A DNA stretch of 64,000 nucleotides from contig CDRNST010000436.1 of assembly GCA_977016875.1 (NCBI GenBank), forward strand, positions 4,898,001 to 4,962,000. Direction: 5' to 3'. Of this stretch, positions 35,326 to 59,362 are shown one piece after another (position 1 is the stretch's first letter; the number at the start of each line of letters is the position of its first letter). The position numbers and the translations under genes were made by a program. The notes beneath the pieces were generated by a model that searched no databases, had not been told where the DNA came from, and saw only the letters and a program-made list of their open reading frames with translations. This DNA is from Pavona decussata (taxonomy: Eukaryota).

Positions 35326-37686
35326 CTACATAAGAACACATTTGTCAACTTTCTTCGTCGTTACTGTTACTGCGTCTGGCAACTGCAAGCAGTAAAAAAG
35401 CTCTCCTAAAATCGAACGATTTCGACGGAGAAGAGTTGCTTTTCTGTTAGCGCTCATCTGTAGTGAGTCCAGGTAGCTCTTAACAGCAATCAGTTGACGA
35501 ATTTCTTTCGCTCTTTCTTCAGTGCATCCCTGTTCGTCGTCGTCGAAAAGCCAACATTTTACCTTTGGTATTTTGTCATTTCTAGGAGAAAATGTGATAT
35601 GTTACAATCTATTAACAGCTAGTCTTATATCCTATATTCGTTTGGCGGTTTTCCGCCAGTGTACGTGTGAAATATTTCTCAACCGGGCTGCTAGCTGTCC
35701 CATTGTTCCCCTGTTACAAGAGGTGCTTACCATTTACGCAAACCACCCGGATGGAAATTTTCGGCATAAATACAAAATGATTTAGCTTGTCTTAACAGAA
35801 GATGGATAACATGCAAAATGTATGAACATCAGCTGTAAATCCCACAAGGAGTAATAAAAATGCATCACTTTGACCAGAATTTCAGAATGATGCGTACCCT
35901 TTGATTTTCCAACTGGAATTTCCGGGTTTTCCACCCAAGTTTACCCGGGGGAAGAACCTCATACAGAAACGTTTGTCTGAATTTTAAAAGAAACATGCTA
36001 GAGAGAGTGCTTGAGTACAGTTCTTACCTGTGAGGAAATGCCTGATGTGCCTCTTGGCTTTCTCTCCCCAACTGTTTGGAGCAAAGCAAACAGAAAAACT
36101 TCCCACAGGTGCCACACCTCATTGCGTTGCAGTCCCCAGGTTCTTTAACAGCGAGAACCGCCGCTCGGTTAGATGCCCTGCATTGGTTGTTGGGACACCT
36201 CACGGCGATGGCTTGAGTGAGTACTTCAAGTAACTGGAGGTTAGCGTCGGTGTCGCTGACACTTTTTTCAGGGGGGCAGATGTGGTCTGAGTAGCCTTGA
36301 GAGCTCAAGGGGAGTTTACAAGTGAGGCAGTAGTCCTTACGACATCTGGGGCAAGGAATGAAGAGTTGTTCAAAATCCGTTTCCTCCAACTCAGCTACGA
36401 AGAAGTAGGGACATCTGGGGCATTGAATGCGTGAGCCTCTCCAAACTGCATCGTTTACCGCAAGATTGTTCAGTTCTTCGGTAACGGGGACTCGTTTTGT
36501 TTGAGACAAAACGTCTTTCAAGATAGTGAATTCGATTTGTGATCCACAGTGATCGGATAAAGGACAGCTCAGGCCAGTTGGCTGCCCAGCCACTGTACGT
36601 TCAGCTGTTGTGCGTGACTTAAACCAGTTTACCACGCATTCATGGCAGAAGATGTGTAGGTCACTGAGGCATCTGATTATCTGAACAAAAATAAGACAAA
36701 ACAAAGAATACTATGAGCATCATTGGGCAATTTTTTCAAGTTCCATCTAAATATTTGCTAAAACCTGATTATAGTTTATTATTCCACGGAGAAATCATTT
36801 CATATTTTTATCCTGGTGCTGTAAGAGCAATTTAATGTTAGAAAAGAGGTTCTTAGTCAAACATTGGAGCAGTTTTAACCAACATACAGCAAAATCTCCG
36901 CGACAGTGCCTCTTTAAGTTTCGTACGGTGGTCTTTCATACATTGAAATCCATAATCCGCGGCAGTCATTCACTTATATGATGGATAGATATTTTATAAT
37001 ATTTCACATTCATTTTTTTTTTGTTTTGCTTCCTCGGTGGGTTTATTACGAATTCACAAAATGACCAGTGCTTGACAGCTCAATAGGTAAAGCACTGCAC
37101 CGTTATCGTAGAGGTCATGGGTTCAAATCCCGTACGAATTTGGGTTCTTTCCGGGTTTATTTCCCCAGCTGTTTAAGTTGCGAACGTAACTGCCTTGTTC
37201 TTTCGTTTATGAAAATCTTTCATCTGCACTTCACATATAAATAATATATTTCACATTCGTGAAATCTAATGTTACTTAGACTTATGCAATTATACAAAAC
37301 ATTGCATTAAAAACAGTTGAGATCAGAATATGACTCCGTCGTGCCGTAGTTTAACTACCTATTTACTTTGGTGAAATACAAACTCTCGCGATCGGTTGTA
37401 TGATGAATTCTTAAAAGCAATACCTCGGCTTCGTAATTTCATAAAATTATGCAAATTGTTGTAAATGAAATCTATAGTGTAGGGGGGCAATCTACCAGCT
37501 TGAAACATGGATGACTAGCTGAAAAAGGGATGGCTAGATTCAATAGTAAAATAATCAGTGTGTCCACCAAATACGAACTTAAGCTACATCCTTACTGATC
37601 AAATCAAAATAACCACAAACATTATTTCTTACCAATGAATTTGTCGTACCGCAACTGGCACATTCTGCAGGTTGACGAGTCGCCAT
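35326..37686 (-). CDS. RBR (RING1-IBR-RING2) E3 ubiquitin ligase-like protein, ~320 aa, with C-terminal CaaX (CVLM); exons 37633-37686, 36028-36680, 35326-35581
   Basis: RING1 CASC...C-LSDL-HIFCHEC...CPLSDHC spans exons 1-2. IBR CPRC...CPRC-RKDY-CLTC...HIC. RING2 CPNNQC...KEPGDCNAMRCGTCGKFFCLLC...AH...CWLF. GT-AG introns in phases 0 and 2. Ends TTKKVDKCVLM-stop. Confidence 0.85.
37065..37200 (+). mobile_element. tRNA-derived SINE remnant in RBR-gene intron 1
   Basis: AGCTCAATAGGTAAAGCA (A-box-like) and GGTTCAAATCCC (B-box), without a proper acceptor stem. Confidence 0.65.
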
Positions 37687-40544: not shown

Positions 40545-43500
40545 ATGGCGACGTCAATGGAAGTTCAACCTTCCTCTTCTAAAGATGTTTCTGACACCGT
40601 TGTGGCGAGTTCTGCTTCCAGTGGAAGTGTTTCAGTGGCTCTTCATCCCCTAGTTATCATGAATATATCTGAACATTATACTAGAATAAAAGCGCAATAC
40701 GGAAAGCCGAATCCACAAGGTTGGTTAATTTTTCTTTCTAATGATATTATATTTGCTACACATCTGTGCATGTTTTCTTGTGTTCTTGTACGAAATATGT
40801 AAAGAGAGTTTAATGTGGAAATACCCTGAATTTCAATACTTTAATACGGGTTGAAATTCTCTTGAATGGTAGATTAAAACAAACGCTCAAACTGTTCTGC
40901 GCAGGGAAACGTCAAAAACGAATTTCGTGCACTCGGTCTTTAAAAACATGTACTTCGTTTGCCCAGTTAATGGCCTAACTTCTTTAACAGTTCTGTAGAG
41001 ACATGTTCCATCAATTTTTTTCTTGGCTAAGCTATGGAATACAGGGCCACTTTTCGAGTTATACCTTAACCTATCCATGCCAACTTTTTCTAAGTCAAAT
41101 GAGTGAGATTTCTGTTTCGTCATTGACCGGGATTTCTGAAAACGTCCGAGCTACCTCCGAAGATTTCTGACGATTTTCCAAAGAGTTTCGAACGTTGCCG
41201 AAAATGTCGGAAGATATTCCGTACACTTACGATTCGAACGGATTGTAGACATTTGAAAGCTTTTGCGATTGTTATAAAGAGCAAAGAAATAATACATAAC
41301 AAATCTGAAATGAAATGATACTTTCTAGAACAACTCGTCTGGATTTGTGAGTCAGGCATGAGAAATTGTCTTCGATGCATGAGATTGATGTCTTTAGTCC
41401 GCAGGGGTGCCACTCCCGCATAATGCATGAGAGTTGGCAGGTATACCTTAACCTTTTGAGCTGGCTCGCCAGCTAATCAGTCCCTCCTAAAAATATTAAA
41501 CTGGACTAGCAAGCTGCAGAGACATAAAATATACACATCTTCCTCATTCTTAAAACGTTAAACTCAACTGGCAAGCCGTCAAACCACTAAAATATATACA
41601 CTTCCTCATTGTTAAAATGTTGAACTCAACTGGTGGGTCCATGATTGCGACCATTGTATTTAAAGATTCAATTTGATAATTTGCATTGCTGCCATTGTTA
41701 AGTCTGAATTTGAAAATGGCTATATTGTGGTTCATATCCTTGGTTTACATTTTATCTTCCTATTGTTCTTGGGTATGGTAGTGTATGATAATGAGTTTGA
41801 AATAATGGAAAATAAAATTAAAACCCAGGATAAAATCGAACCACAACAGCTACATTCCATAAATTTTGTTTTACATCATTGTTGTTGTTGTTTTTATGTT
41901 TCATTTGATTGTTCCTTGCATTTTAGTGATTGGAGCTCTTCTTGGAACTCAAGATGGTCGTAACATAGAAATTTTCAATTCCTTTGAGCTGCAGTTTGAT
42001 CTGTTTGATGATGGACAAATTGTTATTAACATGGAATATTACAGAACAAAGGAGGAGCAGTGTAAGTTGATTAAAACATTAAAACCTGCACCTAAGAACA
42101 GGGGCACCCAACAGATCGTTTCGGTAAATTATCTGTTCGGAAGGCCCTTAATCCCCTACAATTTTCTAAAAATAATTTTCGCCTCGAACTTTCGTGATAT
42201 GGGAAATTTAAGGCCTGGTGTTTTTTGGATTGATAAAAATGTCGTTTCGGGTACCCAAAAAAGGTCAGCTAAGATTTTCGGAAAGGAAATAAGACCTATA
42301 TTTTTTGGGAAATGGACAAAAATGCCCAAGTAATTTCGAAAAGACTCAAGTTCCCCTAGAATGACCGAACAGATAAAAATATTATAGCGCAGCTTTAAGT
42401 GAATCTACAGAGCTTTAAAAGGCACTCCAGATAGCCTAAAATAGCGTTTCAAAGGATCTGAGAGAAAACTCCCATTGGGTGCCCCTGTAAGAATCCCCTG
42501 TACCTTGGCATCTCCTATGAGCTGACACTTATTAAGTCTGGATATTGGCCATGGCTTTTAGAAATCCTAAATTTTCACTGGGAAAAAATAATCAACAGCA
42601 CCACAAAAAAGTACTGCTCTGTAGCTTTCATTTCAATGGTCACACTTTGGGATTTATCCACAGACTCAATAGTTAGAACCACCTTGTACAGCATAATAAA
42701 TGGCACCGCAGGAAAGTACTGCTCAGTAGCTTTCATTTCAATGGTCACACTTTGGGATTTCATCCACAGACTCAAAAGTTAGAACCACCTTGTACAGCAT
42801 AATAAACAGCACCGCAGGAAAGTACTGCTCAGTAGCTTTCATTTGAATGGTCACGCTTTAGGATTTCATCCACAGACTCAAAAGTTAGAACTACCTTGTA
42901 CAGCATAATAAACAGCACTACAGGACAGTACTGCTCATTAGCTTTCATTTGAATGGTCACACTTTAGGATTTCATCCACAGACTCAAAAGCTGGAACCAC
43001 CATTACATCACCAAAAAACAGCACCACAGCAAAGTATTGCTCCGTAGCTTTCTTTTGAACGGTGACACTTTAGGATTTCATCTGCATTGCTGTATAAGGT
43101 TAGGGTTAGAAAATAATGTTTTAGTAGCTCTTTTAAGGATTTCATCCACAGAAAAGTTAGAACCACCCTTTGTACAGCTTATAGTTAATAAACGACAGTA
43201 CAGGAAAGCCTGCCCAGTAGTGTTCACATGATTGATCACACTATTAATGGATTTTTTCCACAGAATCAAAGGTTAGAACAAAATGAAAACAATTTACTGT
43301 CTTTGTTCACTGGAGTTTTTACAGAAGCGTGGCTTTCAACAAATTTCAATGTATATTTATCTGCTCAAGATTATGTTATTAGACTTATTACATAATGGCA
43401 TTTTTTTCCCAGTTCATCAGGTGTTCAAGAATCTGGATTTTCTTGGTTGGTATACAACAGGTTCTTTACCAACTGAAAATGATATCAGAGTACACAAACA

Positions 43501-56826: not shown

Positions 56827-59362
56827 TTTATTTAGGTGTCAATGTATTTAGCGCAGAGCACTAATTGCGGACACTTTCCAGATTGAATTGGAAGTTAGGA
56901 ATGTTGGTTTTTGAGGAGAGGGGAAAAATGGAGTACCCAGAGAAAAACCTCTCAGAACAAGGACCAGAACCAACAACAAGAGAGAAATGAGAAATGATAG
57001 AGTAAAATTCTGAAAACATGTATATCAAGACTGTTAAATTTGATACCATTTCCACCAGTGTTCGACACTAACGCTTGCCTGATTGCCCGGGACAAATAAG
57101 ATATCTCTGTAGGCTTGTTAAACTCTTCTAAAACTTGCCCGATCGGGCAATCACATTTCTTGTTCCTGAAATTAAGCAAACTAAAGGGAGAGTACTGCTC
57201 AGTAGCTTTCATTTGAATGGTCACACTTCAGGATTTCACCCTCAGACTCAAAAGTTAGAACCACCTTCCACAGCACCACAGGAAGGTACTGCTCAGTAGC
57301 TTTCATTTGAATGGTCACACTTTAGGATTTCACCCACAGACTCAAAAGTTAGAACCACCTTCTACAGCTTAATAAACAGCACCACAGGAAAGTACTGCTC
57401 AGTATCTTTCGTTTGAATGGTCACGCTTTAAGATTTCATATACAGATCCAAAAGGTAGAACCACCTTCTACAGCATAATAAACAGCACTTTCATTTGAAT
57501 GCTCACACTTTAGGATTTGATCCACAGACTTTGTTTGGTTAGTCCAACAAACTTCGCAAGTCGCATTTTCTTTTACTGTCGACAATCACCTAACTGGCTT
57601 TCTTATTTGTTTGCAGGGTCACAAAATGCAAAGAGCTTTTTTGAAAGCGTTCAGATGCGGCTTATGACTGTTTCATCACGGAACCCAGTAAACGTGCAAC
57701 AATGTCTACAAACAGCTATTCAAGACCTACTTCATGTAAAGAGCATCGACTCGTGTCTTTCTGTCGATGCGGAGTGTCTTTCATTGTACCTCCAGTGTCA
57801 GCGAATGGTACTCCAAGCTCAAAATGATAAGATATGGAACATACCAGCAGCACTTTGTACTCATCAGGGGTCGGGTTTGAAATCCCTGGTCGAAAACATT
57901 CTCTCAACTTCATATCGCATTGAACATACTTTCTCGGGCTTGAGTCCTCAACAAATCTTCCTGCTCCGGCAGTTAAGGCTCATCGCGCACGCGTTACAGA
58001 TTCTTGTCACGCAACGCTACAGCAGCGCGCGTGAAAGAGGTTTGAACTCCATGCTTCAAGTATGGGAATCATTTTTGATGAGAATCAAAACCTTTTCAAA
58101 TTTTATCAATGCTGAAAACATCAGTACAGATGCCTTCTGTGCGGGTATAGTCTCCTTTCCTAGTTTCTTTGAATCAAACATTACCAACCCTTCAGGAGTG
58201 ATAGATTATGTTCACTCAGTCATACTTCCTCATCAAGTTGCATCACTTCAGTTGACTACAAGTTTGCGCCAAGCATCTGCTGTGTTGAACGAACCCCGCG
58301 GTGGGTCGGACAATCCCCTTTGTTTTTCTGCTGGCCTGACATTGGGAATCAATGTTGAAGCAATGTTGGAGAACGTGGCGGATGCAAGCAAGATCAGGGT
58401 ACAGGTAGGCATTGTGTGTAATTTCCTCGTGCGTTTTTGTATCTTATGAGTGATTAATCACTCAGTTGATCTGCAGCCCTCGTATGCTCCGGTTGGTTGA
58501 ATCTCTGGCGCTCTGAAAGAGTTTTGAATCTGTTCGAATTTTCATCAAAATCAATGATAGTCCTAACTTGTTTCACGGTTAATCAATTTCTTACAAATTA
58601 TTTGCCTTATTCTCTTGGTCCATCTTTCTTACGTTTATGGTCAGGAGAATTTAAGGGTTAATCAATTTACTTCATCTTGACAGGTCGTGTTCCCGGATTT
58701 AAGCTGTCATTGGTTCATTCCCAAACGCGATGACCTTCACGATTTATCTCCGAACAAGCAACGACTTTCTACGACTGTCATCTTATCGCATACTGGATGG
58801 TCTGGTAAGTCTTCTTCTGTTACTGTCTACCCCGCTCCTTATTTTCCTCCATTCCTTTAGTTTTATGAGAGACTGTTGTTTATTAACCCACACAAACTTC
58901 AGCCGTTCAGCTCTGCGCACCCGTGGTGCTGTTAATTTTGTTAAAGGTGGTTCTGATATTTTGCGTCTTCACATTCTCTTATGTAAACTGCTACGCTATT
59001 CTTTCCTGTAGTGCAGTTTATTATGTTGTACAAGGTAGTTTCGACTCAAACACAAAATCCTTGGCTTCTATTTTTCCGGTTACTTTATGCCCTGCTTTTT
59101 TTTTTTGGGGGGGGGGGGGGTGGGAGGAAGGGGGGGCAAGGGCAAGTCTTCCGTGAATAAGCAACGAATGACCGTTTTTGCATTACAAACGGGTACTTCA
59201 TTAACCAGCTGCGTCTAAGTAGATGTATAAACAGACAAGAAATTAAGACCATGCTACGAAGATGGATTATCCAATCTCTTTAGCAGGCCCCCATTTAAAC
59301 CAGCATAAGCTGAATTGTACCTGCCTGCATAAATATCGCTGATAAATAAATAAATAAATGAA

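Follow-up and report, generated by a model that had tools for sequence, protein, structure and literature searches.

A minimal RBR-type ubiquitin ligase with a C-terminal CaaX box in the coral Pavona decussata: a candidate lipid-anchored family of anthozoans

How do RBR ubiquitin ligases reach membranes? They are known to do so via transmembrane helices or via binding partners, and the membrane RBRs RNF144A/B, RNF19A/B and RNF217 use transmembrane helices. The protein predicted from a locus of Pavona decussata likewise has an RBR core followed by a putative C-terminal membrane-targeting element. However, it differs from RNF144, RNF19 and RNF217 in lacking a hydrophobic segment, and its proposed anchor is a prenyl lipid.

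C-terminal CaaX boxes are found among other components of the ubiquitin system. The CaaX-bearing F-box protein FBXL2 is described as a ubiquitin-ligase component that its C-terminal CaaX box directs to membranes (PMC9988375), and Legionella AnkB is farnesylated and targeted to membranes via its C-terminal CaaX box (PMC5506055). FBXL2, FBXL20 and AnkB resemble the coral protein in being ubiquitin-ligase components with a C-terminal CaaX box. These three are, however, SCF substrate receptors without a catalytic cysteine, whereas the coral CaaX box is located on the predicted thioester-forming enzyme itself.

In the literature retrieved for RBR ligases together with prenylation or CaaX, with subscription papers incompletely covered, we found no description of a natural prenylated RBR ligase. 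One paper that mentions both terms (PMC12778051) was set aside, since the CaaX in it is only a GFP-CAAX marker. Searches for RNF14 in corals, or for RBR subfamilies in Nematostella, returned nothing relevant. Here, we analyze the coral gene and its relatives, which together make a good case for a candidate RBR family with a lipid anchor.

The three-exon gene of Pavona decussata

The gene was examined within a 64,000-nucleotide stretch of P. decussata DNA, hereafter called the window, and all positions refer to it. The original prediction joined three GT-AG exons into a protein of about 320 residues, and this model is borne out. The locus lies on the minus strand and consists of three open segments with canonical GT-AG introns between them, which total 963 nt and give 320 codons. 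Exon 1 (37686-37633) encodes MATRQPAECASCGTTNSL, including the start codon and the first cysteine pair of RING1 (C9 and C12), and ends at the donor TTG/GTAAG (slashes mark splice sites). After intron 1 (36681-37632; 952 nt, GT-AG), exon 2 (36680-36028) extends from the acceptor TTGTTCAG/ to the donor CACAG/GTAAG and contains 217 full codons plus two bases. It encodes the remainder of RING1 (to 36546), the IBR (36273-36428) and most of RING2 (from 36203). Intron 2 (35582-36027; 446 nt, GT-AG) is in phase 2 and splits an AGA codon, which is begun in exon 2 and completed by the first base of exon 3. Exon 3 (35581-35326) follows the acceptor TCTCCTAG/ and encodes the conserved cysteine of a CWLF motif (codon 35554-35556), the helical tail and the CaaX box. 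Its C-terminal end reads ...TTKKVDKCVLM-TAG, with the C-V-L-M box at 35329-35340 and the TAG stop codon directly after it, at 35326-35328. In-frame ATGs are present upstream of position 37686; all of the homologues, however, begin at the MA.R position.

The window exons were searched one by one, and the whole-protein analyses were performed on database homologues, for the most part on P0011, with 55% identity across exon 2. A word search detected 17 homologues of exon 2. Two of the homologous proteins, P0011 (321 aa, present on 13 RNA-type contigs) and P0012 (320 aa), are intron-free and derive from short RNA-type contigs of related species. Both predicted junctions run through uninterrupted in these two sequences, as ...SSL/IITC... 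and as ...AFPH-R-N...CWLF. Moreover, other coral assemblies (L003-L008 and L015) contain the same three pieces, each as an exon of its own and with their order unchanged. The exon 1 pattern MA.R...C..C.T..SL recurs in other coral assemblies and forms a separate exon in L003, L006, L007 and L008, while the genomic exon 3 frame from the species of P0011 (P0126) reproduces the intron 2 junction. The transcript evidence and the coral assemblies thereby match both junctions. The original prediction also named skipping of exon 3, or its reading in another frame, as grounds for doubt. The relatives' transcripts use exon 3 in the predicted frame, and the CWLF cysteine that it holds is kept even in the most distant relatives.

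Is the window copy nevertheless a decaying or non-expressed duplicate, or is the three-exon model wrong, such that no CVLM protein is made in this species? The transcript support for the junctions comes from related species rather than from P. decussata, degenerate tandem copies exist in other genomes, and the family evolves fairly fast, with dN/dS values against L006 of 0.53 for exon 2 and 0.80 for exon 3. In contrast, dN/dS of exon 2 is 0.20-0.28 against L003 and L007a, and the window gene is under purifying selection. The three exons are open with canonical splice sites, the zinc ligands are all intact, as are the catalytic cysteine of RING2 and the CaaX box, and the junctions agree with the relatives' transcripts. 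Furthermore, the window gene is the sole copy of this RBR gene detected in the 602 Mb genome. We therefore consider decay of this copy, or an incorrect model, to be very improbable, and we are highly confident that the locus is a real three-exon gene with an RBR identity.

A tandem array was observed in another coral assembly. The loci L007 (ENA ERZ25067868 ctg79218), L017 and L018 belong to this one assembly, in which at least four copies of the RBR gene are arranged over about 90 kb. The copy L007a (P0008) retains the catalytic cysteine and ends in CALM, and in one other copy the catalytic cysteine is replaced by glycine. Two copies (P0010 and P0015) have no CaaX box, one by read-through (GKCVQFLRSFYR) and the other by a diverged tail.

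Intron 1 of the window gene contains a truncated tRNA-like element at 37077-37133, on the plus strand. It reaches 29 bits with the Rfam tRNA model, just at the gathering score, spans model positions 9-63 of 71 and occurs once in the window. ARAGORN calls no tRNA in this intron, and the element probably represents either a pseudo-tRNA or what is left of a tRNA-derived SINE.

The RBR core and its relatives

The predicted architecture, in which RING1, IBR and RING2 are followed by a helical tail, agrees with the Pfam match to the IBR, the ligand patterns and the predicted structure of P0011. In the translation, RING1 has the C3HC4 ligand pattern C9-x2-C12, C22-x4-H27, C30-x2-C33 and C57-x5-C63. 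Pfam detects the IBR (PF01485) with an E value of 4.8e-10, which passes the cut-off of the model. The GDCNAMRC segment of RING2 aligns with GGCNHMQC of the ARIH2 RING2. The predicted catalytic cysteine, Cys202, lies within this GDC-NAM-x-C motif (codon 36129-36131), and both this cysteine and the adjacent asparagine are invariant in an alignment of 16 sequences. The CWLF cysteine would complete the final zinc site of RING2, in which case the catalytic domain would be intact only with exon 3.

When sequences of known structures in the PDB were searched with a single sequence or with the first profile, the results were nearly blank, and significant RBR matches appeared only with the wider family profile A3. 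Against solved structures, the 27-row family profile matched the whole RBR of ARIH2 (E 3.5e-5), HOIL-1 (6.5e-5) and HOIP (5e-4), and the IBR of HOIP and of HOIL-1 was matched by the family profile as well. The ESM Atlas returned generic RBR clusters only.

An AlphaFold model of P0011 based on the 27-row alignment was usable (pLDDT 79), while a 17-row alignment gave a model of insufficient quality (pLDDT 59.8). The pLDDT of the usable model exceeds 90 over RING2 and the tail, which forms a long helix after RING2, and the last four residues are disordered. The top Foldseek matches of the model are all RBR ligases, with RNF216 first (8eb0_A, E 3.9e-8). In the VIA structural alignment, residues 5-301 of the model superpose on residues 512-772 of RNF216 with a Z score of 8.8, and the piece comprising RING2 and the helix (model 161-304) matches residues 652-772 in 7m4n and 7m4o. 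In addition, RING1 of HOIP aligns with this homologue model over 81 residues (Z 6.9, rmsd 3.0).

RNF216 (TRIAD3) thus has the closest structure along almost the entire protein, and in both proteins a helix directly follows RING2. However, the long N-terminal region of RNF216 is missing from the coral protein, in which RING1 starts from residue 9, and the coral protein is 320 aa long with a CaaX end, which RNF216 is not known to have. A sequence-level kinship to RNF216 was expected and then dropped, since the family profile matched no RNF216 chain at E values up to 10; we claim a structural likeness alone. A faint precomputed Rcat_RNF216 match is present on the relative P0005.

An exhaustive profile search returned six cluster representatives at E <1e-30 and 11 at <1e-10, and the weaker matches are generic RBRs. 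Members with a name come from Pocillopora and from Nematostella, whose orthologue is XP_048588314, and carry the automatic NCBI name 'E3 ubiquitin-protein ligase RNF14(-like)'. This name raises the alternative that the protein is the cnidarian RNF14 orthologue and that its CaaX-like ending has no special meaning. The coral protein has the RBR core in common with RNF14, but it has a CaaX box, a different tail and no RWD domain. Pfam finds the IBR alone in full-length P0011 and P0012. The predicted protein begins eight residues before RING1, and in P0102 and P0021 no more than about 14 residues precede the first cysteine of RING1, leaving no room for another domain. Lacking an RWD domain and starting so close to RING1, the protein gives no support for the RNF14 name. 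Moreover, the nearest structure is RNF216 rather than an RNF14-type ligase, the ending is kept over a deep divergence, and in the tree the family forms its own well-supported clade, with protist proteins as its nearest sequence relatives. RNF14 orthology is accordingly scarcely credible.

By these sequence searches, the family is instead a small RBR family so far restricted to anthozoans, namely a sea anemone and stony corals. Placement within an RBR family with documented prenylation would have counted against the original prediction; the tree gives the family its own clade, and the literature that we found describes no such prenylated family.

P0027, a sequence of the dinoflagellate Gymnodinium smaydae, is among the nearest non-cnidarian relatives, together with the transcripts P0024, P0026 and P0029. 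These four sequences share the AH..FPH...C(P/W)LF motif after RING2, in the form AH..FPH...CPLFN, and the helical tail, have no CaaX box, and form the sister group of the anthozoan clade on long branches. This relationship may stem from an ancient lineage of RNF216 type or from gene transfer.

Three public gene models of the family look faulty. In P0022 (Nematostella), the RBR is fused to an unrelated C-terminal part of 450 aa, and P0116 (Nematostella) has an odd repetitive N-terminal extension. The stretch that lies between IBR and RING2 is missing from P0017 (Porites lobata), yet it is present in the near-identical exon frame P0014.

Conservation of the C-terminal CaaX box

The window ending CVLM conforms to the CaaX pattern, with the cysteine at -4, an aliphatic a2 residue and an X residue that the general prenylation rules make compatible with FTase or GGTase-I. 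The original prediction would have been weakened by orthologues lacking the terminal cysteine. The terminal CaaX box is kept in 12 of the 17 lineages, which span Nematostella and the stony corals, although these lineages share phylogeny and do not amount to 12 independent observations. In all 12, the cysteine is located at -4 and the stop codon follows three further residues. The ending is CVLM in the window and L003, CALM in L007a and L020, CVTM in L015, CILM in P0011, CVIV in Porites lobata, CVIL in Pocillopora damicornis and P. verrucosa, CIIL in P0124, CPIM in Nematostella vectensis, CTIL in P0020 and CTIS in P0025. The 10-20 residues upstream of the CaaX cysteine vary in both sequence and length. 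The codons for the cysteine, the leucine and the stop at the CaaX end show synonymous differences between species, indicating that the conservation acts at the protein level.

The CaaX box is absent from the other five lineages: P0012, L006, P0019 and the tandem paralogues P0010 and P0015. Each of these copies is nested beside CaaX-bearing sequences in the tree, which points to separate losses from an ancestral CaaX box. L006, which groups in the same subclade as the window gene, has a long branch. The absence of the motif from these lineages, including L006, indicates that the CaaX box is dispensable in some copies.

An X residue of M or S directs farnesylation, and L directs geranylgeranylation; CPIM, CVTM and CVIV are less canonical prenyltransferase substrates. 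Within the family, the X residue shifts between the M/S and L classes, while the cysteine stays. These changes between the farnesyl- and geranylgeranyl-type classes suggest that the presence of a lipid anchor is more important than the identity of the lipid.

Does the conserved C-terminus serve another function, as a PDZ-type ligand, a C-terminal degron or a redox- or metal-binding cysteine, on a ligase that is soluble? The hydrophobic endings V-L-M, I-L-M, V-I-L and V-I-V could suit a hydrophobic class of C-terminal ligands, and a second membrane signal is not conserved, as described below. However, the sole invariant residue is the cysteine at -4, while position -2 is aliphatic or threonine and the last residue is M, L, S or V. 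This is the rule for a CaaX box and not for a PDZ ligand or degron. The switching of X between farnesyl-type (M, S) and geranylgeranyl-type (L) residues around a constant cysteine argues in the same direction, and the end of the tail is disordered in the model and lies outside any zinc site. A function other than prenylation is thus quite improbable, and the pattern of conservation makes it very probable that the CaaX box is functional and under selection.

Membrane anchoring and its implications

How would this protein associate with a membrane? In exon 3, P0011, P0102 and P0021, we found no transmembrane segment, as the highest mean Kyte-Doolittle value over 19 residues is about 1.0. The lysines upstream of the CaaX box had been likened to the second membrane signal of Ras- and Rho-type proteins, but this part of the original prediction is not supported, because the 12 residues that precede the CaaX cysteine carry a net charge of anything from -1 to +5 across the family. 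There is also no conserved palmitoylatable cysteine upstream of the CaaX box. With such variable basic content and no such cysteine, the family has no conserved second signal, and stable binding to the plasma membrane is therefore not predicted. By analogy with singly lipidated proteins, we would expect an endomembrane or transient association instead.

The genome encodes candidate enzymes for the modification. Matches to the prenyltransferase beta-subunit (PF00432) are present at three loci, with a best E value of 7.9e-112, and there is an ICMT-like gene (PF04140, E 7.6e-14). As a separate observation, the prenyltransferase match at G000:C8:2564069-2565064, on the minus strand, covers the whole Pfam model in an open frame of 412 aa with no stops, which suggests an intron-less copy beside the two multi-exon loci on C67 and C161.

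Based on these results, we propose the following mechanism. The cysteine of CVLM would be farnesylated, in keeping with a methionine as the X residue; the last three residues would then be removed and the cysteine carboxyl-methylated. The prenyl group would hold the ligase at a membrane, on its cytosolic side. There, ubiquitin would pass from the E2 to the predicted catalytic Cys202 of RING2, and then to the substrate. The RNF216-like helical extension after RING2 probably helps to position the ubiquitin, and by its structural likeness may have a role in chain formation. We consider it probable that this full mechanism applies, namely that the protein is a minimal 320-aa RBR ligase of an anthozoan family, and that CVLM is a functional CaaX box by which it is farnesyl-tethered to a membrane. 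The idea of a prenylated ligase, as first put forward, gains from the conserved CaaX box, the lack of a transmembrane segment and the presence of prenylation genes, while lipid attachment itself, like the membrane location and ligase activity of the predicted RBR protein, is inferred.

A conserved CaaX box on the catalytic enzyme would give the RBR class a reversible, drug-sensitive lipid switch, and a compact 320-aa RBR without accessory regulatory domains would serve as a model for the control of RBR activity by membrane recruitment. For coral biology, the family represents a fast-evolving, anthozoan-restricted ubiquitin ligase that is mislabelled as RNF14-like in the public annotation.

A more far-reaching reading holds that the protein is the first natural prenylated thioester-forming E3, specific to anthozoans. 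Its RBR module would have been exchanged between dinoflagellates and cnidarians, or would descend from an old RNF216-like branch that other animals lost, and the cnidarians would have added the CaaX box, placing ubiquitin chain building on a membrane, for instance in endomembrane or innate-immune signalling. We regard this scenario as unlikely. An ancestral role specific to the symbiosome is also unlikely, because the family is present in Nematostella, which is not known to host dinoflagellate symbionts.

Several other open reading frames on the plus strand of the window have recognizable domains. The frames at 2825-3844 and 6005-6565 match the Pfam Ion_trans domain (E 1.9e-24) and a cyclic-nucleotide-binding domain (E 9.3e-12), and probably represent exons of a channel gene of the HCN/CNG type. 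The frame at 57517-58449 contains the helical-bundle domain of Integrator subunit 4 (E 6.8e-49) together with its C-terminal domain. Finally, about 4 kb from the RBR gene, the frame at 41866-42333 contains a JAB/MPN domain (E 3e-5), which is of a ubiquitin-system type.
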